This document shows, piece by piece, positions 11,727 to 40,886 of a stretch of DNA of 64,000 nucleotides. The DNA comes from Phaeosaccion multiseriatum (lineage: Eukaryota > Protista > Ochrophyta, other classes). The stretch spans positions 1,984,001 through 2,048,000 of the forward strand of contig OZ218951.1 in NCBI GenBank assembly GCA_965112735.1, written 5' to 3'. A program made the position numbers and the translations under genes. The notes beneath the pieces were generated by a model, which was not told the origin of the DNA, did no database searches, and was given only the letters and a program-made list of their open reading frames with translations. The stretch's first letter is position 1. Every line of letters begins with the position of its first letter.

Positions 11727-14700
11727 CATCATCCTCATCATCCTCATCAGCAGCAGCAGCAGCAACAACCTCAGCCGGAGCAGAGGCGACGGCTCACCAC
11801 CCTCCCGACCCGTGCGCCACTCCCATCCTCGCCATCACGCCAAAGCGAAGCGGTCACGCGCACCGCCTCGTTCGCCTGGCCCTCCGCCTCCATGAGGAGA
11901 GGAGCGCAGACATCGTGATCGGGGTGGACAACGGAAGCCCTCCCCTCCCCGCGGCGTATTCCGTGCGTACTCAGCTTGTGGATGTGCTCCACGAGCTCCT
12001 GCACGCGACGATGGCAGTGGACGGAAGCGAAGGCGCATGGCATCGTCGGTGTCTGTTGGAAGAGATGCATTTCGACGTGTTGGGTGTCTCTCCACAGGAG
12101 TGGCGAATGGAATCTATGACCAAGAATCCAGAATACTATCACGATTGTAAGTGACAAAACATGAGCTGAGGATGGTCACGTCGCTCTACTATGGTCACCT
12201 CGCTGTACTGCTCCCTTGGACCGCCCTTCTTTGTTTCGCTTTGCTTGCTTGTGCCCTCCTACTTATGTTCCCTCTGTCTTGCTGCCACGCTCATTTGTAA
12301 GATCCGATTTGCGTGCCTGCTTCCACCCCTCTGCTTTCCTTTCATCCCCCCCCCTCCCTCCCTTATCCTCCCTCCCTCCCTCCCTCCCTCCCTCTCTCCC
12401 TCCCTCCCTCCCTCCCTCCCTCCCTCCCTCCCTCCCTCCCTCCCTCCCTCCCTCCCTCCCTCCCTCCCTCCCTCCCTTGCCTGTATTTCTGTCTGGTTCG
12501 CAGTGGCGTCACGCCTGTGGGCTCATCTGGAGATGCCCTTCCGTTGCATCCCGACACGTGTCGAGGCGGTCGAGGAGGCGAAGCTCGGCGACGAGGACGG
12601 AGAGGACAGCAGAGACGACCGTAGACACGAGGGGCGCACCGAGGCTCTGAAGGAGATTGAGAAGCTGAGTAGGGTAGTGGGTGACATCTTGGCAGGCCTA
12701 GAGCACAGTCGACCGCTTCTCACCCTACCATCAACACCAGCAGGGAAGTGCTCGAAGGAGGAGGAGGAGGAGGAGGACAACAGAGCCGTACGCGAGGCCT
12801 TCCCTGCGTGGAGGCGAGGCGGCAACACCTTCTTCTTCTCGGCAAACTCCCTGCTGGAGGTGCCCAACACATCGCCGTGCGTCAATGGGGTATTCACTCG
12901 CCGGTCGGACTTTGTCCATTGCATGCTCCAGACGATGCTTGGGAGGACTGTGCTGATGTGTCCTGCCATGGCGGTGACGCACTCCCGCGACCGCTGGGAA
13001 GACTGCGACATGAGCACAAGGGAGGGAATCGGGGAGAAGGGGGAGGGGGAGGAAGGGGAGGGCGCGGAGGCGGAAGAGGAGGAGGGGAAGGAAGGAGAAG
13101 ATCAGCACGACGATGACGAGGCGGGGAAGGATGAGGATGAGGTGCGCCGCCTCGAGATGATGGAGCAGGTGAAGAAGGACCATCTCGGGTCGGCGGTGTA
13201 TCGCGCACTGGAGAAGGTCATTGCTCTCGCGCTGAAGGAGGAGGTTAGTGCACCCCCCAACACGAAGGAGGAGGAGGAGGAGGAGGAGGAGGAGGAGGAG
13301 GAGAAGGAGGAGGGGCCGGACAATGTCGGGGCCGTGGGTGTAGAGGCTGCCATTGCGTTCTTCTCCACCAGCAACAGCAAGAGAGTAGAGCTCTTCCGGC
13401 GCTGCTTCCGTGAATGCCTTCACAGCAGGGCGGCGGCCTTTGAGGAGTCCGTGCTGCGCATTCACGGCCTCACGCACAGCATAGACAACGTGCTCTCTCG
13501 CTGTCCGTCGTCGCCGTCCTCCTCCTCCCCCCCCTCCTCCTCCTCCCCCTCCTCCTCCTCCCCCTCCTCCTCCTCCTCCTCCTCCTCCTCATCATCATCA
13601 TCATCATCATCATCGGCATCAACATCAACATCAACATCAGCATCTGCTTGCCGTTGGTGGGTTGGCACACCGGAGGCCTCATCTCTCTCTGTGGCGATGG
13701 AGAGGATTCGTCGCCTCTTCCATCGACCGGGCCAGCACCACTACTTCCAGCTCGTCGTGGGCACCAGTGACCTCGGGGAGAGCGTGCGGGAGGAGTCGGG
13801 GGTCAGGGGCGTGGAGGACCAGGTGGTGCAATGGCTGACGAAGGAGCTGCCTGACCAGCTTCGGCAGAGGCACGATGGAAGCCGGTTGGAAGGCTTGGCA
13901 GGAGTAGACGAGCGATACAGAGACGCGCGGGCGGTGCTGGCGATGGCGTGCCCAGGCGAGTGGGAGGTGGTGGGTCGAGGGGACGAAGGAGTCACGTTTC
14001 TGCGGCAGCACCACCACCAACAGGGGAAGGTGAAGGTGAAGGTGCTCGACCGGTTCAACGAGAGAGCCACAGCGGAGCAAAGACGCTTCGTCCTGAAGGA
14101 GCTGCCCCTTATGCTCTCCACTGACAAGCCCTCACTGCATTTCCCTCACATTCTGAATGTGCTTCAGGTGCCATCGCCGAGGTTTGATGGTGGCAGTGAG
14201 GAAGGGGGCGTTGCGGTAGTGCCTGGTGGCAGTGAGGAAGGGGGCGTTGCTGCAGTGCTACCGCCGTGCATGATGATGCAGTGGCAGGAAGGGGAGACCT
14301 TCGGCGAGGTTGGAGGTCTTCTCTCCTCTCTCTCAGACAGAGAGCAGACGGAGGTGCTCCTCTCGTTTGTCGACGAGTGCGAGCAATTGGGTCTCGTGTG
14401 CAGGAACGTACATCCCAAGAACATGCTCTTCCGTGGCGGGGAGGAGGAGGAGGAGGAGGCGGAGGAGGAGGTGAAGGGGGTTGGAGGGGGGAAGGGAGAG
14501 GGAGGCGGAGGAGGGGCAGCAGTGGCAGAAGCACCAGCAGCACCAGCAGCAGGAAGAGGAGAAGGAGCAGAGATCCCAAAGAGGAGGAGGGGGAGGCTGC
14601 TATTCTTTGATGTCGGCCTCGACATGATGCCATGGAGCGAGAAGGAGGCCATCGCGATGGTGAAGAAGCTCGTGCTGTCCTTCCATCATACCATCAGCAA

Positions 14701-15353: not shown

Positions 15354-15612
15354 GTTCAAGAAAAAGATGCGGACGAGAAGGTGTGGCCCGCTGAGCAGCT
15401 CGTCAGGAACGTGCATGCAGTCCACCCCCACCTTGCTTCTCTACATCAGTCACAAGCAATCCCCCTGCTGGACGCCTGCCGTAGGGTCCAGGAAGACAAG
15501 CAAACGATGGTTTCATGAGCATGTGCACTAGCCAACTCATGTCGTAGCTTGCTACCCCTCCCACCTCCCACCCCCCCGCTCTGCCTGCCTGCCTGTCTGC
15601 CTGCCTGCCTGT

Positions 15613-15654
<42 letters not shown>

Positions 15655-16789
15655 ACCTGCCTGCCTACCTGTCTGTCTGCCTGCCTGCCTGCCTATCTGG
15701 TCGGGCCTCGCTTCGCTCTGCACTGCAGCTGGGCTTTGCTTTGGCTGGTGCGGGCTTCGACGTCCAGACGGGAGGTCTCGGCGGGGTCATGAAGGGAGCG
15801 TGTCGTGGTGTGCAGCGCTGGAGGAGGGAGCACTGGCGCTCCACATTGGCCGCCTCTAACGACCCGTGCGCAGTTCCTCCACTCGCCATTGGAATCCTCC
15901 CCGGGGCGTGGAGTGGCGATGCCAACAGTTACGTAGACGTCGGTAAGTCGTGGAGGGGAGGGGAGGAGGAGGGGAGGAGGAGGGGAGGAGGAGGGGAGGG
16001 GGGGTCGCTCGGGAGGAGGGGACAGGGTCAAGAGCCAGCAGGGGAGGGGGGAACAGCACAAGTAGGGAGGGGGGCGAGGTCAAAACGGTTTGGGAGGGAG
16101 GAAGGAAGGACGGTTTGGGGGGCTACGTCTGCCCAATTCTTCGTCGCTCGATGTTTGTGTAGTTGCCGCCGCCCTTTTAGTATTGGTACGCACCCGCTAT
16201 TTTTCGCTCGCTCGCTCCTCCCCCCCCCCCCCCTCGCCCGGCTTTCCTTTGCGCTGACCAAAGGCCCGTCTGCCTCACTTCCTCCTGCCTCGGTCCCTCC
16301 TGCCTCCGCTCCTCAGTGGTGCCCACCGACATGCAGCACGTGCTGAGTGTGCTGGTGTGCCAGGACGCTTACGCCGTGGTGGCTGTAGGCGGCGGTGCAG
16401 GCACAGTTACAGAGATTGCCATCGCTTGGAACCTGAGGCGGCTCCTCCTCGCCTGGCGTGGACCCCATCCGACTCCGAGTTCGTCGTCTTCTTTGGCCTC
16501 TCCTTCGCCGCTCCAACAGAACGACGGAGAGAAGCAACAACAGCACGGTCCCTCCGCAGCAGCGGAGTCTGTGGGCCTGGTCGAGCCTCCCCCTCCCCCT
16601 CCCACGGCAGGTCAGAGGTTTGCAGGCGAGAGAGTGGACCACAGACGCCGGGTGAGGGATGCGGACGGCTCCTACGGCTGCTTGCATGCGGATGATCGAG
16701 TTTTCCCCTTTGATTGCGCCGCCGAGGCTATATCGATCATCAAAGACAAGGGCCCCTCGTACGATAAGGCTGCGAAGCGAATCGCGTGA
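4231..16789 (+). CDS. ~3,288-aa multi-enzyme fusion: Asn-synthetase-like amidotransferase + arylamine N-acetyltransferase + GT2 + second GT-A-like domain + kinase-like + SLOG/TIGR00725 domain; 9 exons
   Basis: Exons 4231-4480, 4917-5905, 6174-9698, 9951-10031, 10244-11240, 11583-12146, 12504-15277, 15729-15942, 16317-16789 (9,867 nt, all GT-AG, in frame). Motifs: MCGI, NGEIYN, RDPLGIKPL, SGGIDS, GEGADELFAGY, RVPYLD; GGPCVVLN/H/CDVG; IIATCNR, IVDD, ILDDDDEW, GGFDE..CTDRDL; WVLDDD; GRGDEG, CRNVHPKN, FDVG; VIGG, TGGLGGVM, GILPG, GGGAGTVTE. Confidence 0.88.
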
Positions 16790-18072: not shown

Positions 18073-18809
18073 TAATTGAAAGCATGAGTACATTCTTAAA
18101 ACAAACAAAATTAAAAAGGATAAATGTCGGTCTCCCCGGGCGGGCGATCTGCCTGCTGTCTTCTTATGCCTGACTGACTCAGGGCCTTGTCCTCCTGCGG
18201 GCTGCCTCTCCGCACGGCCCTACCCCTCCTCAGTAGCGCAGCAGGCTACACGGGCGGCCCTGTGGACGGCAATATTACGTGCTCCAGTGAGAGAGGCACC
18301 ACACTTAAGTCCCAAAGGTGAGAACCACATGGAATGGGTGGCTCAGCTTGACGCGCTGTAGCGGGCCCGAAGAGCGCTCCCGCTTCGTGTTCACGAAAAT
18401 CATTGTAGCTATGCCGCTGAGCAGCGCGGAGGCAGTCGGAGGGGACAGTCAGCAGAGCAGGCCCAAGGCGCGAAAGCAGCATCAGGGCTGCACGCGATCC
18501 TCTTTGCAGAGCAGTGTGCCGTCGTAGCTTCTTCCTCCGCCATGCGCCCAGCCTGTGCGTCATCGCCACCAGCACGCGTGGGGCCCAGCGCTTCCTACCC
18601 AGTGTGCAAAGGAACCTCGTCCGCTGCCCTCCTGTTGCCTAGACCACCTCCCCCCGGACCACCTCTGGCCATGCCCATACACCTGCAAATGCAAGGGGGG
18701 GGGTCCAAAAGGGCTCCAGAGGGGTGCGTTTCTTCGTTTTTCTCAGCCTTGCTCACAACCACAGTTGCCTCAGGCCTCGCTACTGCCGCAAGACTACCAA
18801 CAAAGCACC

Positions 18810-19513
18810 ATGACTCGCGTCATCCTCACTCTCTTCGCCCTGCTCTTCGTGGCAGTTCTCTCCGGCGCCGCCGAAGTCCCCGACACCATCAAGGACAAGC
18901 CGGCCCGCAAGCTGTAAGTTCAAGGATCGGATCTTTCGTGCTTGTGCCCGTGCACGTCCTCTACACTCGCTCCGCTCTCCTCTTCTCGGCTCTCGCACAC
19001 CTCTTCTCTGCCTCACGCTCCGCTCGACTTATGTTGTACGCTCGCTTTTGCCCCTGCCGCCTCCGTTCCGCCCTTCGTCCCTCCCCCGTCGCTCTTCACC
19101 TTCACTCCGGGCGCCGCTCCGCTACAGGAGCTACGGCTCTCGAGGCGAAGGCCACCAGAGGGGACGCAAACTGTAAGTGACGTCTCCCTACATCGCTCAC
19201 ACCTGCTTACTGTCTGTCTCTCACCGTCTTTCCCTTTCCACTCCGCGCTCCTCATCTACTCGGATCCAATTGACTCCGCCGCCATCGACCCGGATCATGT
19301 GCGCCCCCCCCCGCTCAACTTCTTTACCCTGGCGATAACAGCTACCACTGGGGCGGATGGGGCGGATGGGGCGGATGGGGCAAGTGGGGCAAGTGGGGCA
19401 AGTGGGGAGGGTGAGTGCTGGTGGGGCAAGTGGGGACTGAGTATATACTTCCACACTATAGTCTCACATCTGTCCTCCTCCCTTCACCTCCTCCTTCGCG
19501 CTGCAGCTGGTGA
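18810..19513 (+). CDS. secreted RKL-motif precursor of a Trp/Gly-rich peptide (74 aa), copy 1, 4 exons
   Basis: Exons 18810-18913, 19128-19172, 19342-19410, 19507-19513 give MTRVILTLFALLFVAVLSGAAEVPDTIKDKPARKL-SYGSRGEGHQRGRKL-YHWGGWGGWGGWGKWGKWGKWGGW*; strong gtaagt/gtgagt donors, all phase 2. Confidence 0.8.
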
Positions 19514-20887
19514 GCGATGTCCATCTTCCGGATGGGTCTAGCTACCTCCGCCCCCGCCCATCGTTCGCGTCCGCGCTGCTCTGATGGCAAGCACCTTCAC
19601 CACCAGCAGGTGCTCGGTGCTCCGGAGCTTTCGACAACAAGCTTCGTGTGACCATAGGCAGAGAGAAAGGAGCCTTATTTATTTGATATCGTATTTGCAT
19701 TAATTCAGTCTCGCAACTTAAGATCCTTCTCAGAGCGATGTCTCGGCCTCGACATGTGTGTGCTCCTTGAGATGCTAAGGTCAAGCAGCACGCTGATGGG
19801 TTGAGTGCTGCCCCCTCAAAACAATCCCAAGACGGCGGCGCAGTCTTTTCTCACTCCACACCCCAAAGACTAGCTAGCCAGAACAGACTGCCGATCCATG
19901 TCTAGCTATGAGGCAAGAAGGAAGCGAGAGTAAAAGGCAGCGGGAGGGAGAGAGAGAGACTGGGAGGGAGAGCGGGATAGATATCTCCGCTCCTTGTGCT
20001 GCTGCCCTTCTCAACGCCTCCGCGCTCTTCGACAAGGTAGCTAACGGCGCTGAGGGGAGTTGTAATCCAATCCAATGCTGAAGTCAATGGGAGTGAGTGT
20101 GGTACAGGAGCCCTTCCTTTCCTCGTGCTGCCTCTCTCTACAAGTGAGCACCCGCTGCAGCAGCGAAGGCATAGAAAGCTTCTTGTAGTCATCGGTCACT
20201 CTGCCTGTCACGGGTCCTCCCCGCTCTCTGGTATGTTTAGCCATGGAGGCCTCAGAAGGCATTGGGTTTGGTGATCCGATTCACAGATCCCGATCGCAGG
20301 AGGGGGAAGTTCCGTTGCTTGGGGCGAGGGGGCAGCGGTAGCAAGACTGTATTGAGTGCGGACAGACGCGACCGCGCAGCTACTGCCTAGATGACCGGTG
20401 CCTGCCTTTTGCCTCCACACGAGCACGACCCCCGCCTAGGACCTGGCGTTCACCTTTTATCATTGTGTGTTTAGCAGGGCAGTACCCTTCTAAGTAATGC
20501 CCCACCCTGGAAGCCCTCGGCCTCGATCCATTGGGACTACACTCTCCCCCCTTCAAACGAATTGACCTTCCCTTTCCCCCCCCCCTCAAGCTATACACTA
20601 TATCCATTCTTGGTCCCGTACGCTACACACTTGACTTCCCCCCCCCCCCCGGACCCCCTACCTCCTGTGCTCCGCTCCTCTCTGCGACAGACGATCGCAA
20701 TCACTTCACCGCTCTTACGCCAAGCCAGTGTGCCGTGGACTGTCTCTCTCTCTCATCGCATCCTGAGTACAGGCTCACTCGCATGGGCGGCATGACTGGT
20801 GCAAGTGAGCAGCTGGAGTGGTACTCTTTCGTTGCCAAAGTCGTCGCTGCCCTACCAGCCCCCACCCCGCACATCCCTCCTGCTCGC

Positions 20888-22586
20888 TCAGCCCATCTCC
20901 TCCGCCATGCTCTCCCACGTCTCGCTCTGCACCCGCCCGGGCCTCTCCAGCGGCAGGATTCCGCTCTCCTTGCCGAAGGTCTTATCCGTCCTTCGCATGA
21001 GGTCCAGCGCGGTTTGGGACCGGAAGAAGGCTGCTGCCGCCTCCGTAAGTCGCTGCTCGATGTCCCGGCCGAGCTGCCACCGCCGGGCCTCAGCCAAGGC
21101 CTTGTCCACCGAAGCACCGGCCGAGAGGAGCTGCCGCACAATGCTGTGATGATCACTGCAGATAGCGGCAGCCAGCGGGGAACAAGGGATGTCGACTCTT
21201 GAGGCATCCATGGGGGCTCCCGCAGAGATGAGACGAGCGACGACGGCCTCGTGCCCACCCTCCGCGGCAAGAAGGAGGGGTGTTGCGCCAGTGTTGGCCT
21301 CTTTGTCCACACGCGCTCCCGCACAGAGAAGCTTCTCCACCACGGCGTCGTGTCCATGTTGACAGGCAAAGTGAAGAGCAGTGTAACCTTTGGGTTCAGC
21401 CTTGTCGATCGGGGATCCCGCAGAGATGAGACGAGCGACGACGGCCTCGTGCCCATTCTTCGCGGCAAGAAGGAGGGGCGTCGCGCCATTGTTGGCCTCT
21501 TTGTCCACACGTGCTCCCGCAGAGAGAAGCTTCTCCACCACGGCGTCGTCTCCACGTTGAGAGGCCATGTGAAGAGCAGTGAAACCTTTGGGGTCAGCCT
21601 TGTCGATGGGTGACCCCGCAGAGATGAGACGAGCGACGACGGCCTCGTGCCCACCCTCCGCGGCAAGGATGAGGGGTGTTGCGCCAGTGTTGGTCTCTTT
21701 GTCCACACGTGCTCCCGCAGAGAGAAGCTTCTCCACCACGGAGTCGTGCCCTTCCTGACAGGCAAAGTGAAGAGCAGTGAAACCTTCGGGGTCAGCCTTG
21801 TCGATGATGGCGTGAGCCCTGATGAGCTGCTGTACAATGCCCGCATGTCCATTGAACGATGCCTGCAGAAGCGGAGTAGCCCCGAGATTATCTGCGTGGT
21901 TCACATCCGCTTGGGCTGAGATGAGGAGCCTTACAACAGAGCCATGCCCGTTCTGAGCGGCCATCCAAATCGGAGAAAACCCCTGCTTCTCCGCCAAGTC
22001 GACACTAGCACGCGCCGAGAGCAGCTGCTGCACTATCGTGGAGTGCCCCTCATCTGAGGCTGCAATCAAGGGAGTAGCTCCTGCGTCATTCGCTTCGTCG
22101 ACAGGGGCTCCAATGTCCAACAGCCGCCTCACCACCTGATCGTGTCCGTTGCAGACAGCGCCTATCAACGGCGTGTCTCCACAGGGCCCCCCTCTGGTTC
22201 TGAAGGAGGCCCCTTCCCGCAGCACAAGGTCCACGACATCCAGCCGACCGTATCTTGAAGCGCAGAGTGCAGACGAATCGCCCTCTTCATTGATAGGCTC
22301 ATCCAAACGCGCTTTGCCGTGCTTGGCGATGAGCTTCACAATCAGCGCTCTCACAGTGAGGAAGCTATCTCCTCTTTCCAGAGCCTGCCCGAGTCGCCGC
22401 GCCTGGGGTTGAGGGAAACGAGTTTAGGGGGGAGAGGCGGAAAAACTGGAAAAAAAGGGATAATGAAGAGAAAAAGTATAAGGACCCCTCTCTTTGATTT
22501 GTTTTTCTAGAGGACACCATCTTATAGGAGGCAGGACGCTGATGCTACATCCGTACCTCCTGCGTCAAAGTTGCCTGCTGCGCCAT
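20888..22586 (-). CDS. ankyrin-repeat protein, 12 repeats, 514 aa (array copy 1)
   Basis: 30-nt exon 22586-22557 (MAQQATLTQE) spliced to 22402-20888; canonical G-x-T-P/A-L-x-x-A-x-x-x-G-H 33-aa repeats. Confidence 0.9.
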
Positions 22587-24659: not shown

Positions 24660-25660
24660 CTTTCCAGCACTCACTCACCCACTCCTCACCCACTCACTCA
24701 CGCGGGACACACGGACGCACGCACTCGCACGCTCGCATGCACGCACTCACTCATTCACTTCCTCACTCCCTCCTCCGTCTCTCCCTCTTCCCTCCCTCTC
24801 TCCCTTCCTCCTTCCTCCCTCCCTCCCTCCCTCCCTTCCTTCCCTCCCTCCCTCCCTCCCTCCATCACTCACTCACTCACTCATTCACTCACTCACTCAC
24901 TCACCCACTCACTCACTCACTCACTCACTCACTCACTCACTCACTCACTTACTCACTCACTCACTCACTCACTCATTCAATCACTCCCTCCCTCCCTCCC
25001 TCCCTCCCTCCCTCCCTCCCTCCCTCCCTCCCTCCCTCCCTCCCTCCCTCCCTCCCTCCCTCCCTCCCTCCCTCCCTCCCTCCCTCCCTCCCTCCCTCCC
25101 TCCCTCCCTCCCTCCCTCCCTCCCTCCCTCCCTCCCTCCCTCCCTCCCTCCCTCCCTCCCTCCCTCCCTCCCTCCCTCCCTCCCTCCCTCCCTCCCTCCC
25201 TCCCTCCCTCCCTCCCTCCCTCCCTCCCTCCCTCCCTCCCTCCCTCCCTCCCTCCCTCCCTCCCTCCCTCCCTCCCTCCCTCCCTCCCTCCCTCCCTCCC
25301 TCCCTCCCTCCCTCCCTCCCTCCCTCCCTCCCTCCCTCCCTCCCTCCCTCCCTCCCTCCCTCCCTCCCTCCCTCCCTCCCTCCCTCCCTCCCTCCCTCCC
25401 TCCCTCCCTCCCTCCCTCCCTCCCTCCGTCACGCTTTTACTCCCTCAATCCCTCACTTCCTGGCAGACCCCCCTCACTCCCTCAGTCCCTCGCCTACCCA
25501 ATCACTCCCGCACGCACTCACTCTCACTCACGCACGCACGCACGCACTCAAGCCTTCACTCACTCCCCACCCTCACTACTCACCCCTCTCTCACTCACAC
25601 AGCACTCCATCCTTCCCTCACTCACTCCCTCACTCACCCCCCCTACTCCCTCACTTCGGC
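24660..25660. repeat. compound microsatellite (CACT)n/(CCCT)n, pure CCCT run ~24985-25426
   Basis: Directly visible; source of the spurious LPPS and GGRE ORFs. Confidence 0.95.
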
Positions 25661-26532: not shown

Positions 26533-27717
26533 TCAGTTGCGGCAGTCGGCTCCTCTGCAGCGAAAAGAAGGACTACGATACGGAGGTGGAGTAAGCAAAA
26601 AGAAGAGCGGAAAACGCCGAGCTGGAACTTACGTAGAGGGCGCAGGTGTGGGTGATGCTTGGCTGTTGTCGATATAAATGAAGACCGAAGTTGATAGAAG
26701 CCATAGAAGCCCGGTCCGCGGTGTGAAGCGCAGGGCCGAGAAGAGAGGAGAAGTGGAGAGAAGAGAGTAGAGTGAGGAGAAGAAGACTCCGCTTGAGCAT
26801 GCAGTTCACTTGGGGGCTTACAGTTTGCGGGCGTGGCGGTCGCGATCATCCCCTAAGCCATCTTCATCGCCATCATCCCCGAACTCATCTTCTTCGTCTC
26901 CGTCCCTGACACGACGCGACGATGGTGTGCAGATGGCGCGCGATGGAGATAGGACAGCAGAGGGAAGAAGCGCGAGGGTAGGGGCGGAGAGGAAGATGTC
27001 AAGACGCCGGCAAGTGTAAAGCCGGGAGAGGGGGGGACGGAGAGAGAAACCCAGGGAGGGACGCAAAGAGGGCGCGAGGGGGAAACTTACTCCTGCAGCT
27101 TGCGGGCGCGGCGGTTGCCAGAGGGCGCAGGTGTGGGCGATGCTTGACTGTTGTCGATGTACATGAAGACCGAAGTTGATAGAAGCCCGGTCCGCGGTGT
27201 GAAGCGCAGGGCCGAGAAGAGAGGAGCAGTGGAGAGAAGAGAGTAGAGTGAGGAGAAGAAGACTCCGCTTGAGCATGCAAGTTCACTTGGGTGCTTACAG
27301 TTTGCGGGCGCGGCGGTCGCCATTATCCCCGAAGTCATCTTCATCGTTTCCGTCGCTATTGTTGGCGCAGTCCGTGAGGTCGCATGGAGAGGAAACGTCA
27401 CAGGAGAGGACGAAGCGCGAGCCCGGGGGAGTGGAGGCGGTGGAGGCGGATGTCAAGAGAGGAGGAGGGGGAGAGAAGCGCACAGAGGCGGGCAATGAGT
27501 CGGGGGGTTGCGAGGCAGAGGAGGGACAGCGGGCTCAAGAGCAGGTGTGTTCGAATGAGGCGACAAGAGCGGGGCAAAAGATCTTCCCCCCTTTTGATGC
27601 TCATGGAACTTACTCCTGCAGTTCGCGGGCCTCGGAGAAGGTGTCAGGGACTCGGGCGGCGCTGGAGAGCACTGCGACAAGGAGCAGGGTGAAGAGAGCG
27701 AAGAGAGAGAGGTGCAT
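26533..27717 (-). CDS. secreted RKL-motif multi-peptide precursor with Asp/Glu-rich and Pro/Ser/Thr modules (117 aa), 6 exons
   Basis: Exons 27717-27614, 27355-27299, 27147-27091, 26905-26822, 26662-26633, 26554-26533 give MHLSLFALFTLLLVAVLSSAARVPDTFSEAREL-QDDGNDEDDFGDNGDRRARKL-QASPTPAPSGNRRARKL-QEDGDEEDEFGDDGDEDGLGDDRDRHARKL-QASPTPAPSTGADCRN*; five gtaag..ag introns, all phase 2. Confidence 0.8.
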
Positions 27718-27999
27718 GGTGTGCTTGCGTGGGTTGGTTGGGTCCTGCGAGATAGCTCCTGTGTGTGTTGTTGTTGTGTTGTGTGACACGGGCAACACTC
27801 CACTCTCTTGGAGCCCTTTTGGATGATAGTATTCTTGATTGCAAAGGCCGTCCTGCAAAGACCCAAATTTGATGAGCGGGATGAGCACAGAGGCGGGTCT
27901 TTGCGGCATGTACCAGGCTGTGCAGACTGCGAGTGGGCCACTTGTGCCGTCCGCACATGTGCACAGAGGGGGGATAGCGCCCCTTCTTCTACGCGGAGG

Positions 28000-28840: not shown

Positions 28841-30214
28841 GACTGAGGGCCGCCGGTGCATGTGGGATGATCACGGATGGGAGTGATAGGTGAAGGGGTC
28901 GCGATATGGTTGGCGGGTTAGGCCTGTGACGAGCACAGCGCCCACCGAAGGAAGGCACTGGTATCTATCGCTCGCCAGGGCATTGGAAATTTTGCTCTCT
29001 GGCGAAAGGGGTCCTCTCGTGCGGCGCCATGAATGGGGGAGTGTAGGCAAGAGGCAGCGGGGGACGGGAGGGGAGAGGGAGGGAGGGAGAGGGAGCGAGG
29101 AAGGGAGCGAGGCAGGAGGCGAGAGGGAGGAAGGGAAGGAGGCCGAGTGACAGGAGGGCAGCTACGAGGGATGGGGAGCCACTCTTCACCCGCAGCTTCA
29201 TGTCCAAGCTTCGAATGCTTCACCGGAAAAGCGGCGCATCGCAGTGTCGATCGTCCGAAGCACTCACAGGGTCCTGCTATCCGCGCACCAGGCTACATCG
29301 CGGGCTTGGCTCTTTGATGCTTCCACGACAGTCACATCAGAACAGGGCTAGGGTTAGGGTTAGTGTGAGGAATTGGGCTCATGGCGCTTCTGCACAGTAC
29401 GTGCTTCGTACGTGAGAAAATGATTCGGAAGGCGGTCAACGATGGGACTGCTGCAGCTCTTTGCGTATCGTAATACATCGTCGTCAACAGGCCCCTGCAC
29501 TCGGCCTTCTGCCTACGGTCTCCGCGGGCGCTCTGCCTGCTGTCTTCGTATGCCTGACTCAGGGCCTTGCCCTCCTGCGGGCTGCCTCTCCGCACGGCTC
29601 TACCCCTCCTCAGTAGCGCAGCACGCTACACGGGCGGCCCTGTGGTAGGCAGCATTATGTGCTTCAGCGAGAGAGGCACCACACTTTGGTCCCAAAGGTA
29701 AAAACCACATGGAATGGGTGGCTCAGCTTGACGCGCTGTAGCGGGCCCGAAGAGCGCGCCCGCTTCGTGTTCACGAAAATCATTGTAGCTATGCCGTGGA
29801 GCAGCGCGGAGGCAGTCGGAGGGGAGACAGTCTGCAGAGCAGGCCCAAGGCGCGAAAGCAGCATCAGGGCTGCACGCGATCCTCTTTGCAGGGCAGTGTG
29901 CCGTCGTAGCTTCTTCCTCCGCCATGCGCCCAGCCTGTGCGTCATCGCCACCAGCACGCGTGGGGCCCAGCGCTTCCTACCCAGTGTGCAAAGGAACCTC
30001 GTCCGCTGCCTTCCCGCCTGACCACCTGCCCCGGACAACCCTCTGCCATACCCATACACCTGCAAATCTTGGCACGGGTTGTCACGATCACTTATCAAGG
30101 GGGGTGGTCCAAAAAAAGGGCTCCAGGCATTTTTTTTTGTTTTTCTCTGCCTTGCTCACAACCACAGTTGCCTCAGGCCTCGCTACTGCCCCGCAAGACT
30201 ACCAGCAAAGCACC

Positions 30215-30919
30215 ATGACTCGCGTCATCCTCACTCTCTTCGCCCTGCTCTTCGTGGCAGTGCTCTCCGGCGCCGCCGAAGTCCCCGACACCATCAAGGA
30301 CAAGCCGGCCCGCAAGCTGTAAGTTCAAGGATCGGATCTTGCCTGCTTGTGCCCGTGCACGTCCTCTACACTCGGCTCTCCTCCTCGGCTCTCGCACACC
30401 TCTTGTCTGCCTCACGCTCCGCTCGACTAATGTTGTACGCTCGCTTTTGCCCCTGCCGCGCGCCTCCGCTCCGCCTTCGTCCCTGCCTCCCTTCACCTTC
30501 CCGGGCGCCACTCCACTACAGGAGCTACGGCTCTCGAGGCGAAGGCCACCAGAGGGGACGCAAACTGTAAGTGACGTCGTCTCCCTACATCGCTCACACC
30601 TGCTTACTGTCTGTCTCTCACCGTCATCCCCTTTCCACTCCGCGCTCCTCATCCACTCGGATCCAATTGACTCCGCCGCCATCGACCCGGATCGTGTGCC
30701 CCCCCCCGCTCAACTTGGGCATCCTTTACCCCTCTGGCGATAACAGCTACCACTGGGGCGGATGGGGCGGATGGGGATGGGGCAAGTGGGGCAAGTGGGG
30801 CAAGTGGGGAGGGTGAGTGCTGGTGGGGCAAGTGGGGACTGGCTGAGTATATATATATGCGTGTCCGTCTCACATCTGTCCTCCTCCCTTCGCCTCCTCC
30901 TTCGCGCTGCAGCTGGTGA
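30215..30919 (+). CDS. secreted RKL-motif precursor of a Trp/Gly-rich peptide (73 aa), copy 2
   Basis: Exons 30215-30318, 30522-30566, 30747-30812, 30913-30919; protein identical to copy 1 except for one in-frame Gly deletion, while the introns carry more indels. Confidence 0.8.
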
Positions 30920-32336: not shown

Positions 32337-34408
32337 TCAGCCCATCTCCTCCGCCACGCTCTCCCACGTCTCGCTCTGCACACTCCAGGGCCTCTCCAGC
32401 GGCAGGATTCCGCTCTCCTTGCCGAAGGTCTTATCCGTCCTTCGCATGAGGTCCAGCGCGGTTTGGGACCGGAAGAAGGCTGCTGCCGCCTCCGTAAGTC
32501 GCTGCTCGATGTCCCGGCCGAGCTGCCACCGCCGGGCCTCAGCCAAGGCCTTCTCCACCGAAGCACCGGCCGAGAGGAGCTGCCGCACAATGCTGTGCTG
32601 ATCACTACAGATAGCGGCAACCAGCGGGGAACAAGGGATGTCTACTCTTGAGGCATCCATGGGGGATCCCGCAGAGATGAGAAGAGCGACGACGGCCTCG
32701 TGCCCTTTCAGCGCGGCAAGGTGGAGGGGTGTTGCGCCAGTGTTGGCCTCTTTGTCCACACGTGCTCCCGCAGAGAGAAGCTTCTCCACCACGGCGTCGT
32801 GTCCATGTTGACAGGCAAGGTGAAGAGCAGTGTAACCTTTGGGTTCAGCCTTGTCGATGGGGGATCCCGCAGAGATGAGACGAGCGACGACGGCCTCGTG
32901 CCCATTCTTCGCGGCAAGAAGGAGGGGCGTCGCGCCATTGTTGGCCTCTTTGTCCACACGTGCTCCCGCACAGAGAAGCTTCTCCACCACGGCGTCGTCT
33001 CCACGTTGAGAGGCAATGTGAAGAGCAGTGAAACCTTTGGGGTCAGCCTTGTCGATGGGTGACCCCGCAGAGATGAGACGAGCGACGACGGCCTCGTGCC
33101 CACCCTCCGCGGCAAGGATGAGGGGTGTTGCGCCAGTGTTGGCCTCTTTGTCCACACGTGCTCCCGCAGAGAGAAGCTTCTCCACCACGGAGTCGTGCCC
33201 TTCCTGACAGGCAAAGTGAAGAGCAGTGAAACCTTCGGGGTCAGCCTTGTCCACACGTGCTCCCGCAGAGATGAGACGAGCGACGACGGCCTCGTGCCCA
33301 TTCTGCGCGGCAAGCATGAGGGGTGATTCGCCGGTGTTGGTACATTTGTCCACCTGTGCTCCCGCACAGAGAAGCTTCTCCACCACGGCGTCGTGCCCTT
33401 CCTGACAGGCAACGTGAAGAGGAGTGAAACCTTGAAGTTCAGCCTTGTCGATGATGGCGTGAGCCCTGATGAGCTGCTGTACAGTGCCCGCATGCCCATT
33501 GAGCGATGCCATCAGAAGCGGAGTTCTGCCGAGATCACTGGCGTGGTTCACATCCGCTTGGGCTGAGATGAGGTGCCTTGGAACAGAGCCATGTCCATTC
33601 TGAGAGGCCATCCAAATCGGAGAAAACCCCTGCTTCGCCGCCAAGTCGACACTAGCGCGCGCCGAAAGCAGCCGCTGCACTATCGTGGAGTGCCCTCTAC
33701 CTGAGGCTGCCATCAAGGGAGTAACTCCTGCGTCATTCGCTTCGTCGAAAGGGGCTCCAATGACCAACAGCCGCCTCACCACCTGATCGTGTCCGTTGCC
33801 GGCAGCGCATATCAACGCCGTGTCTCCAAAGGGCCCGCCTCTGGTTCTGAAGGAGGCCCCTTCCCGCAACAGAAGGTCCACGACATCCAGTCGACCGTAT
33901 CTTGAAGCGCAGAGTGCAGACGAATAGCCCTCTTCATCGATAGGCTGATCCAAACTCGCTTTGCCGTGCTTGGCGATGAGCTTCCCAATCAGCGCTCTCA
34001 CAGTGAGGAAGCTATCTCCCCTTGCCAGAGCCTGTCCGAGTCGCCGCGCCTGGTGTTGTGGAGGGAAAGGAGTTAAGGGGGGAGAGGGCGCATAAACCGG
34101 ACAAAAAGGGATCAACGGAGAGCGGCTCATAGGTCGACACGCGAGCTTCCCAGCGCAGCTATCGTATCCGCAGAATGACCCCCCCTCCCTTCTTTCTCTC
34201 CAGTCGTCTTGCTACTGCGTACTGTGCCTCAAAAGAGGGCAAGCTGCTCACAACTTCGGGAGCGTTACGTAAGCGTCCTTCCGCAGCTATCGTGTCTACC
34301 ATTCGAACTCCCCCCTCTCGCTTTGCGCTTTTCTCTCTGAAGCACAGAGTCGTCCTCCAAGAGGGCGCTAGGTCGTACCTCGGGCGTTGTAGTTGCCTGC
34401 TGCGCCAT
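32337..34408 (-). CDS. ankyrin-repeat protein, 14 repeats, 580 aa (array copy 2)
   Basis: Exon 34408-34379 (MAQQATTTPE) + 34049-32337. Confidence 0.9.
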
Positions 34409-36115: not shown

Positions 36116-37834
36116 TCAGCTCATCTCCTCCGCCATGCTCTCCCACGTCTCGCTCTGCACCCGCCCGGGCCTCTCCAGCGGCAGGATTCCGCTCTCCTTG
36201 CCGAAGGTCTTATCCGTCCTTCGCATGAGGTCCAGCGCGGTTTGGGACCGGAAGAAGGCTGCTGCTGCCTCCATAAGTCGCTGCTCGATGCCGAGGCCGA
36301 GCTGACACCGCTGTGCCCCAGCCAAGGCCTTGTCCACCGAAGCACCGGCCGAGAGGAGCTGCCGCGCAATGATGTGCTGATCACTGCAGATAGCGGCAAC
36401 CAGCGGGGAAGGGACGTCTACTCTTGAGGCATCCATGGGGGATCCCGCAGAGATGAGACGAGCGACGACGGCCTCGTGCCCATTCTGCGCGGCAAGAAAG
36501 AGGGGTGTTGCGCCGTCGGTGGCCTCTTTGTCCACACGTGCTCCCGCGCAGAGAAGCTTCTCCACCACGGTGTCGTGTCCAATTTGAGAGGCCATGTGAA
36601 GAGCAGTGAAACCTTCGAGTTCAGCCTTGTCGATGGGGGATCCCGCAGAGATGAGAAGAGCGACGACGGCCTCGCGCCCATTCTGCACGGCATGATGGAG
36701 GGGTGTTGTGCCATGGTTGGTCACTTTGTCCACCTGTGCTCCCGCAGAGAGAAGCTCCTCCACCACGGCGTCGTGTCCATGGTGAGAGGCAATGTGAAGA
36801 GCAGTGACACCTTCGGCATCAGCGTTGTCGATGGGGGATCCCGCAGAGATGAGCCGGGCGACGACGGCCTCGTGTCCATTCTGCACGGCATGGTTGAGGG
36901 GGGAATTGCCGGTGTTGGCCCATTTGTCCACCTGTGCTCCCGCACTGAGAAGCTTCTCCACCACGGCGTCGTGTCCATCGTGAGAGGCAAGGTGAAGAGG
37001 AGTGAGACCTTCGTGGTCAGCCTTGTCGATGATGGCGTGAGCCCTGATGAGCTGCTGTACAATGCCCGCATGCCCATTGACTGATGCCTGCAGAAGCGGA
37101 GTTCTGCCGAAATTATCTGCGTGGTTCACATCCGCTTGGGCTGAGATGAGGTGCCTTACAACAGAGCCATGTCCGTTCTGAGAGGCAATCCAAATCGGAG
37201 AACGCCCCTGCTTCTCCGCCAAGTCGACACTAGCACGCGCCGAGAGCAGCTGCTGCACTATCGTGGAGTGCCCCTCATCTGAGGCTGCCATCAAGGGAGT
37301 ACCTCCTGCGTCATTCGCTTCGTCGACAGGGGCTCCAATGTCCAACAGCCGCCTCACCACCTGATCGTGTCCGCTGCTGATAGCGCTTATCAGCGCCGTG
37401 TCTCCAAAGGGCCCGCCTCTGGTTCTGAAGGAGGCCCCTTCCCGCAGCAGAAGGTCCAAGACATCCAGCCGACCGTGCCTTGAAGCGCAGAGTGCAGACG
37501 AATCGCCGTCTTCGTCGATAGGCTGGTCCAAACTGGCTTTGCCGTGCTTGGCGATGAGCTTCCCAATCAGCGCTCTCACAGTGAGGAAGCTATCTCCTCT
37601 TTCCAGAGCCTGTCCGAGTCGCCGCGCCTGGGGTTGATGAGGGAAACGAGTTTAGGGGGGAGAGGCGCATAAACTGGACAAAAAGTGATCAACGGGGAGC
37701 TGCTCACTGGTCACACGTGATCTCAGCGCAAAAATAAGTTCCTCTCTCTTCTCTCTTTTTCCAAATAACACCATCTTATAGGAGGCAGGGCTCTACATCC
37801 GTACCTCGGGCGCTAAAGTTGCCTGCTGCGCCAT
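36116..37834 (-). CDS. ankyrin-repeat protein, 12 repeats, 513 aa (array copy 3)
   Basis: Exon 37834-37805 (MAQQATLAPE) + 37627-36116. Confidence 0.9.
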
Positions 37835-38783: not shown

Positions 38784-40886
38784 TCAGCCCATCTCCTCCG
38801 CCATGCTCTCCCACGTCTCGCTCTGCACCCGCCCGGGCCTCTCCAGCGGCAGGATTCCGCTCTCCTTGCCGAAGGTCTTATCCGTCCTTCGCATGAGGTC
38901 CAGCGCGGTTTGGGACCGGAAGAAAGCTGCTGCCGCCTCCATAAGTCGCTGCTCCAAGTCCCGGCCGAGCCCATTACGCCGTGCCCCAGCCAAGGCCTTG
39001 TCCACCGAAGCACCGGCTGAGAGGAGCTGCCGCACAATGCTGTGCTCATCACTGTAGATAGCGACAATCAGCGGGGAAATACGGTCTACTCTTGAGGCAT
39101 CCATGGGGGATCCCACAGAGATGAGACGGGCGACGACGGCCTCGTGCCCATTCTGCGCGGCATGATGGAGGGGTGTTGCGCCATTGTTGGCCTCTTTGTC
39201 CACACGTGCTCCCGCACAGAGAAGCTTCTCCACCACGGCGTCGTGCCCTTCCAGACAGGCAAAGTGAAGAGCAGTGAAACCATCGGGGTTAGCTTTGTCG
39301 ATGGGTGATCCCGCAGAGATGAGACGGGCGACGACGGCCTCGTGCCCATTGTTCGCGGCAACTATGAGCGGTGTTGCGCTTTTGTTGGTCACTTTGTCCA
39401 CACGCGCTCCCGCAGAGAGAAGCTCCTCCACCACGGCGTCGTGTCCATGGTGAGAGGCAAAGTGAAGAGCAGTGACACCTTCGGCGTCAGCCTTGTCGAT
39501 GGGGGATCCCGCAGAGATGAGACGAGCGACGACGGCCTCGTGCCCATTCTCCGCGGCAAGAACGAGGGGTGTTGCGCCAGTGTTGGGCCCTTTGTCCACA
39601 CGTGCTCCCGCACAGAGAAGCTTCTCCACCACGGCGTCGTGCCCTTCCTGACAGGCAAAGTGAAGAGCAGTGAAACCTTCGGGGTCAGCCTTGTCGATGG
39701 GGGATCCCGCAGAGATGAGCCGGGCGACGACGGCCTCGTGCCCATTCAGCGCGGCAAGGTTGAGGGGTGTTGCGCCATTGTTGGCCACTTTGTCCACACG
39801 TGCTCCCGCACAGAGAAGCTTCTCCACCACGGCGTCGTGCCCTTGCTGACAGGCAAAGTGAAGAGCAGTGAAACCTGTGGGGGAAGCCTTGTCGATGGGT
39901 GATCCCGCAGAGATGAGACGAGCGACGACGGCCTCGTGCCCATTATGCGCGGCAAGAAGAAGGGGTGAATTGCCGGTGGTGGTCCATTTGTCCACCTGTG
40001 CTCCCGCACTGAGAAGCTTCTCCACCACGGCGTCGTGTCCCTTGTGAGATGCAAGGTGAAGAGGAGTGAAACCTTTGGGGTCAGCCTTGTCGATGATGGC
40101 GTGAGCCCTGATGAGCTGCTGTACAATACCCGCATGCCCATTGCGTGATGCCGGCAGAAGCGGAGTTCTGCCGAAATTATCTGCGTGGTTCACATCCGCT
40201 TGGGCTGAGATGAGGAGCCTTACAACAGAGCCATGTCCGTTCTGAGAGGCCATCCAAATCGGAGAAAACCCCTGCTTGTCGGCCAAGTCCACACTAGCAC
40301 GCGCCGAGAGCAGCTGCTGCACTATCGTGGAGTGCCCCTCTCCTGAGGCTGCCATCAGGGGAGTAGTAGCTCCTGTGTCATTCGCTTGGTCCACAGGGGC
40401 TCCAATGTCCAACAGCCGCCTCACCACCTGATCGTGCCCGTTGCAGACAGCGCCTATCAACGGCGTGTCTCCAAAGGGCCCGCCTCTGGTTCTGAAGGAG
40501 GCCCCTTCCCGCAGCAGAAGGTCCACGACATCCAGCCGACCGTCTCTTGAAGCGCAGAGTGCAGACGAATCGCCCTCTTCATTGATAGGCTCATCCAAAC
40601 TCGCTTTGCCGTGCTTGGCGATGAGCTTCACAATCAGCGCTCTCACAGTGAGGAAGCTATCTCCTCTTTCCAGAGCCTGCCCGAGTCGCCGCGCCTGGGG
40701 TTGAGGGAAACGAGTTTAGGGGGGAGAGGCGCATAAACCGGACAAAAAGGGATCAACGAAGAGCTGCTCACTACTCGACACGTGAGCTTCCCAGCGCAGC
40801 TATCGTATCTTTTTAAAGGACACCACCTTATCGGAGGCAGGACGCTACATCCGTACCTCGGGCGTAAAAGTTGCCTGCTGCGCCAT
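38784..40886 (-). CDS. ankyrin-repeat protein, 16 repeats, 646 aa (array copy 4)
   Basis: Exon 40886-40857 (MAQQATFTPE) + 40694-38784. Confidence 0.9.

Follow-up and report, generated by a model that had tools for sequence, protein, structure and literature searches.

Diatoms provide some of the closest described systems. The repeat units of their silaffin, silacidin, frustulin, and cingulin precursors end in an R-x-L motif, which has been proposed as the cleavage site of a dedicated endopeptidase, and in cingulins, clusters of K-x-x-K alternate with Trp- or Tyr-rich regions (PMC4557024). The same paper documents R-x-L as a maturation site of silaffin, cingulin, and silacidin precursors, on which the initial annotation of the DNA considered here had relied.

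We analyzed a window of 64,000 nucleotides from Phaeosaccion multiseriatum (contig OZ218951.1) and found in it a gene, here called the W gene, whose predicted product is built like diatom wall-protein precursors (PMC4557024), with an N-terminal signal peptide, R-x-L after the pro-region and at unit ends, and a low-complexity payload. As in diatom wall proteins, Lys occurs in K-x-x-K spacing, and Trp and Tyr versions (compare W-cingulin and Y-cingulin) are accompanied by acidic partner peptides. Unlike diatom precursors, the W gene shows no sequence similarity to them, has no Ser-rich blocks, carries a single 24-residue payload with a strict Trp period of three, and distributes its units one per micro-exon between phase-2 introns; moreover, its genome yielded no match to a silicon transporter. 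The payload (the W peptide) also resembles the nematode NLP/caenacin peptides (YGGWG/YGGYG; PMC6780910, PMC2453101), which are secreted, basic, made up almost entirely of Gly plus Trp/Tyr, and encoded by clustered, diversified small genes, although these belong to an unrelated lineage, have an unrelated leader, are not processed at R-x-L, and lack the strict three-residue Trp period. With marine cements (tubeworm Pc-1/Pc-2 plus acidic Pc-3, and mussel fp-3; PMC4275877), it shares a basic, repetitive, Gly/aromatic/Lys-rich composition and predicted secretion; the cements, which coacervate with polyanions, are animal proteins of 10-20 kDa whose Tyr is converted to DOPA, whereas here we find Trp in a short peptide. 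The family member closest to the cements is a Tyr/Gly/Lys/Arg sister peptide, described below.

The W gene consists of four micro-exons and three introns, with the following positions in the window.

18810..18913, plus strand: exon 1, with start codon, signal peptide, and pro-segment ending A-R-K-(L) (translation and copy alignment)
18914..19127, plus strand: intron 1, phase 2, GTAAGT...ACAG (copy alignment)
19128..19172, plus strand: exon 2, 45 nt, a 15-residue basic spacer ending G-R-K-(L) (translation)
19173..19341, plus strand: intron 2, phase 2, GTAAGT...ACAG (copy alignment)
19342..19410, plus strand: exon 3, 69 nt, encoding Y-H, three W-G-G, three W-G-K, and W-G-(G) (translation)
19411..19506, plus strand: intron 3, phase 2, GTGAGT...GCAG (copy alignment)
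19507..19513, plus strand: exon 4, with the final base of the Gly codon, Trp, and stop (translation)

The exon translations give a product of 74 aa, composed of the signal peptide, the ARKL pro-segment, the GRKL spacer, and a Trp-rich tail, and they uphold the initial proposal of four micro-exons, absent from the ORF track, that encode a signal peptide, ARKL, a 15-aa spacer ending GRKL, and 8 Trp in 24 aa. The codons split by the introns, read by hand, are Leu (exons 1/2), Leu (exons 2/3), and Gly (exons 3/4). The tail is short (24 residues, ∼2.8 kDa) and net positive (charge of +3); it starts with Y-H, followed by eight Trp, one per three positions, with Gly-Gly or Gly-Lys between them, so that it contains 8 Trp (33%), 11 Gly (46%), 3 Lys, 1 Tyr, and 1 His. 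Its W-G-K units form two to three overlapping K-x-x-K motifs in a payload with zero Ser, whereas the silaffin/cingulin clusters are Ser/Lys-rich.

Since the three introns are all in phase 2, an unspliced reading runs into a stop at once (TAA, TAA, and TGA), which explains why the ORF list misses the gene; these in-frame stops are a simple result of phase 2 combined with GTAAG/GTGAG intron starts, and no special device is involved. The donor G closes apparent CTG/GGG codons, and one-base donor corrections therefore place the ends of exons 1, 2, and 3 at 18913, 19172, and 19410. In HSP90, a conserved multi-exon gene of the same genome, introns measure 130 to 330 nt, begin with GTGAG or GTAAG, and end with ACAG or GCAG; the splice sites and intron sizes of the W gene match these, and its splice sites are thus normal for this organism. 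Retention of intron 3 would cost the product just its final Trp. Two alternative ORFs over the locus, of 212 and 199 aa, have no Pfam family and vary in extent from copy to copy, and we discarded them as chance frames in pyrimidine-rich DNA. The coding strand of exon 3 (window positions 19349-19407, plus strand) contains seven GGGG tracts at 5-nt spacing; such tracts are forced by Trp-Gly codons (TGG GGN) and make the exon and its mRNA strongly G-quadruplex-prone, which may influence transcription, translation, or repeat instability.

We then looked at the genome as a whole (67.1 Mb, 22 contigs) and found six full copies of the W gene, all of them on contig 2 within 230 kb (2.00 to 2.23 Mb) and arranged as three pairs with ∼12 kb between members, the middle pair being in inverted orientation. 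The second copy lies in the same window, and the conserved unit extends past the stop codon of the first.

30215..30919, plus strand: second W copy, with exons 30215-30318, 30522-30566, 30747-30812, and 30913-30919
19514..19763, plus strand: conserved 3' flank, a probable 3' UTR (mean pairwise difference of 0.047 versus 0.32 further downstream)

As first described, this duplicate keeps identical splice sites and differs by one in-frame codon; our alignment shows that exon 3 is the one shorter by this codon and adds one synonymous change in exon 1. Across the six copies, the conserved unit runs from ∼120 nt before the ATG to ∼250 nt beyond the stop (window positions 18690-19763), and outside it the set is essentially unalignable. 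We aligned all six copies and counted variable sites in ungapped columns, with exons 1, 2, and 4 as the exon set: 3 of 158 exon sites varied versus 63 of 443 intron sites (Fisher P = 2.4e-6). Exon 2 shows no base difference among the six copies, and the three variable sites, all in exon 1, comprise two synonymous changes and one Val/Ile exchange. Intron 1 has 26 variable and 25 gapped columns, and intron 3, the most diverged segment of the gene (mean pairwise difference of 0.146), nevertheless retains both splice sites in all copies. Indels follow the same division. Those in exons measure 3, 6, 9, and 15 nt, all multiples of three (with 6, 9, and 15 nt among the length differences of exon 3), whereas those in introns include 1, 2, 4, 7, and 11 nt (1, 3, 4, and 6 nt in intron 1; 2, 3, 4, and 11 nt in intron 2).

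At the peptide level, the payload ranges from 22 to 25 residues and differs by whole units, with two to three W-G-G and three to four W-G-K. Three of the six copies have one Gly less. In a single copy, W-G-R-R-W replaces the W-G-K run, and the 7-nt exon 4 of this copy contains an extra in-frame TGG. The conservation of exons far above introns, combined with in-frame exon indels, is a pattern beyond chance, and we consider it highly probable on these grounds that the locus is a real, multicopy nuclear coding gene. Gene conversion among the copies could contribute to the identity of the exons, and the payload has the character of a microsatellite with a 9-nt unit, in which length changes would stay in frame even in the absence of selection.

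Searches for relatives elsewhere were run exon by exon. In Pfam, neither exon 1 nor exon 3 nor the payload exon of a paralogue described below matched any family at a cutoff as loose as E ≤ 10, and word searches of protein collections returned no match for the exon 3 open frame or for exon 1 padded with in-frame 5' sequence. An exhaustive phmmer search of 1.84 billion representatives yielded no genuine relative: the sole match, an 18-fold repeat protein (P0001), covered just the intron-derived half of the query and is spurious. An Atlas feature search with the Trp-rich part gave no usable match either. When metagenomes were scanned for three consecutive W-G-K, 104 contigs were retrieved, almost all of them (about 100) plain 9-nt microsatellites, and none showed an R-x-L, Y-H, or signal-peptide context. 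A few contigs carry W-G-K runs inside longer ORFs (L045, L057, L080, and L114, from Ga0115005/Ga0115006; L101 and L102, with a GC content of 0.72) and might encode unrelated Trp/Lys-rich peptides of other eukaryotes. Nothing like the W peptide is thus present in the protein collections or metagenomes searched, and the R-x-L precursor design is already known from diatoms.

The lack of such a protein in these collections and the microsatellite nature of the metagenomic runs are what one would expect if the W model were not expressed as drawn, the locus being silent duplicated DNA, or its transcript remaining unspliced and giving a 35-residue exon 1 product or a noncoding RNA, with the W-G run as a G-rich 9-nt microsatellite. 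We regard this as distinctly unlikely, given that six copies with introns diverged by 2 to 15% share an invariant exon 2 and a nearly invariant exon 1, and that all donors and acceptors are intact in every copy. The period-3 pattern of four Trp is also nearly restricted to the six W loci (13 of its 16 matches in the genome, with 13 matches for the reversed control), and a paralogue has the same leader, phase, and donor in front of a different payload, again in the correct frame.

This paralogue is one of several. The leader exon of the W gene has relatives in the genome, in which the phase-2 design, the R-x-L motif, and an upstream motif recur with other payloads.

Contig 2, about 2103806 (L019:1493-2417), plus strand: ARSL paralogue, with leader, intron, and single payload exon
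26533..27717 of the window, minus strand: acidic-peptide sister gene, with related leader, upstream motif at 27809-27822 (minus strand), and acidic/Pro-rich cassettes
Contig 13, about 889898, minus strand (L023), and 848358, plus strand (L026): leader paralogues

The ARSL paralogue, 100 kb from the W gene, retains 76% of the leader, in which ARSL comes last, and has a phase-2 GTAAGT donor. An intron of ∼650 nt, pyrimidine-rich with a CT microsatellite, is followed by a 53-codon exon in the correct frame, encoding a 53-residue Tyr/Gly/Lys/Arg-rich peptide reminiscent of the cement proteins of tubeworms and mussels. In the acidic-peptide gene and four further copies of it, the leader is 60% identical, ends with AREL, and precedes acidic and Pro-rich cassettes. 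The two contig 13 genes carry the W-type leader for a Lys/Glu/Asp/Leu repeat (with units like D-E-L-K-E-K-L-G-D-K-K) and have no intron after it. Every member of the leader family has an A at position -3 of the ATG. Fragments of the W 3' flank also recur, alone or duplicated, near other family members (L007 and L009 to L011, contig 2), which suggests that the family shares or shuffles its 3' ends in addition to its leaders.

By inspection, the signal peptide encoded by exon 1 has a basic n-region with Arg, a 14-residue hydrophobic core, Gly at -3, and Ala at -1, and the next residue is Glu, not an aromatic residue, which counts against plastid targeting. ARKL closes exon 1 and GRKL closes exon 2 in all six W copies, and the sister genes have ARSL or AREL at the position of ARKL. 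Since only the middle residue of the motif (K, S, or E) varies across the leader family, with R and L constant, an R-x-L site is favored over a dibasic one, and we lean slightly toward the view that the predicted precursor is cut at R-x-L. To our knowledge, no R-x-L protease has been identified so far, diatoms included.

The upstream motif was located at the following positions for the two W copies of the window.

18705..18718, plus strand: motif CCAAAAGGGCTCCA, ∼100 nt before the W ATG, a candidate promoter element common to the sister genes
30114-30125, plus strand: core of the motif, second W copy

With up to one mismatch, the 14-nt motif CCAAAAGGGCTCCA had 40 matches in the genome versus 5 for the reversed control, an eight-fold excess. 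It lies 87 to 125 nt before the start codon in the W, acidic-peptide, and contig 13 genes, where the remaining upstream DNA has diverged, and its core AAAAGGGCTCCA is carried at this distance by most genes of the leader family. From this distribution, we take the motif to be a shared promoter element and a candidate cis-regulatory element of a coexpressed set of secreted peptides; alternatively, the genes would share it because their entire 5' ends descend from a common ancestor.

Concerning function, we infer that the W gene is expressed and its product cleaved and secreted. We propose that the signal peptide would take the precursor into the endoplasmic reticulum, and that an R-x-L endoprotease, as proposed for diatom wall-protein precursors, would cut after ARKL and GRKL and free a basic peptide of 22 to 25 residues with Trp at every third position. 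This peptide may then act as a sticker-and-spacer unit, with Trp as sticker and Gly as spacer, in an extracellular material such as a wall, coat, mucilage, or glue, which Trp-Trp and Lys-Trp (cation-π) contacts would hold together and in which the acidic and Tyr/Gly/Lys-rich sister peptides, with the same leader and motif, are probably partners. In tubeworm cement, basic Gly/Tyr-rich and acidic proteins coacervate (PMC4275877). The encoding of basic Gly/aromatic and polyanionic peptides under one leader, as in that coacervation, favors a material or glue, and by this analogy we tentatively view the W peptide as a processed building block of an extracellular material or adhesive, at somewhat less than an even chance.

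Trp-rich cationic antimicrobials, such as indolicidin, tritrpticin, and the Trp domain of puroindoline, are short, cationic, and very rich in Trp like the W peptide, whereas indolicidin-type peptides are, unlike it, Pro/Arg-rich and Gly-poor and have no three-residue period. The main rival to a material role supposes the same gene and processing, but with the cationic Trp-rich peptide disrupting microbial membranes and the clustered, length-variable copies reflecting diversification under pathogen pressure. A short, basic payload that is one-third Trp fits antimicrobial peptides in composition, and it varies by copy next to a frozen leader and spacer; yet its Gly content and modest charge make it a weak amphipath, and the sister genes combine the W-type leader and motif with polyanionic/Pro-rich peptides, which are better suited to a composite material. 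The nematode basic Gly/aromatic peptides with YGGWG or YGGYG, the products of clustered and diversified genes, are counted as antimicrobial (PMC6780910, PMC2453101), but PMC6780910 itself states that they lacked direct activity tests. On balance, we hold an antimicrobial role to be unlikely, if still to be reckoned with.

A third reading would make the W peptide a component of a biomineral matrix, silica forming or silica associated as in diatoms, to which the R-x-L sites, the K-x-x-K spacing in the W-G-K units, and a richness in Trp like that of W-cingulins (PMC4557024) would point. The exon-by-exon search of the whole 67-Mb genome, however, found no member of the silicon transporter family PF03842, an absence that is likely rather than proven; the W product has no Ser-rich or phosphorylation-prone segments, and our searches found no diatom protein similar to it in sequence. 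Since no silicon transporter gene was found, a role in silica appears very improbable indeed. The precursor architecture of the initial annotation (signal peptide, R-x-L pro-segments, and Trp/Gly/Lys peptide) gains support from the six paralogues and the sister genes. Among the possible functions it listed (structural, biomineral, adhesive, and antimicrobial), the biomineral branch gains none.

The Gly-flanked Trp and overlapping W-x-x-W of the payload are also features of GW/WG Argonaute-binding repeats and of the C-mannosylation sequon W-x-x-W, respectively. Argonaute hooks work in the cytoplasm or nucleus; the W product instead has a signal peptide, and this reading was ruled out for that reason. 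The initial annotation had allowed for modification after translation, of which C-mannosylation was the form examined indirectly here. This idea was set aside with no match to a DPY19 enzyme gene in the genome: of five candidates scored for the C-mannosyltransferase family (PF10034), none reached E ≤ 0.001, a provisional absence, the control genomes being prokaryotes.

If the W gene is expressed, standard ORF- or homology-based annotation overlooks an entire class of secreted peptides encoded by micro-exons in this alga, and the R-x-L precursor design, hitherto tied to diatom silica, would extend to an organism with no detected silicon transporter gene. The W peptide would then also be useful as a very simple natural sequence, made of Trp with Gly-Gly or Gly-Lys spacers, for studies of cation-π assembly, wet adhesion, or membrane activity, and the upstream motif shared within the leader family provides a means of finding the coregulated gene set. 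Starting from the material role that we prefer, one could go further and suppose that R-x-L exon-cassette precursors form a general extracellular-matrix system of photosynthetic stramenopiles, which arose before or independently of diatom silica. The peptide with Trp at every third position would in that case be a new self-assembling unit, extended and polyproline II-like (three residues per turn) with Trp, Gly, and Lys faces, locking by cation-π contacts with itself and with acidic partners into a salt-tolerant glue or wall layer. We consider this extension speculative and rather improbable.

Finally, we recorded two features of the neighborhood. A microsatellite of ∼1 kb, (CCTC)n/(CACTCACT)n, lies between the two W copies at window positions 24668-25637 and is the source of the strongest GC-skew excursion of the window, and related arrays occur at 12268-12525 and 15525-15694. 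Inside the duplicated blocks, the W genes adjoin ankyrin-repeat ORFs.

20888-22354, 32337-34130, 36116-37579, and 38784-40646, minus strand: four paralogous ankyrin-repeat ORFs, with an internal period of 198 nt (two repeats)
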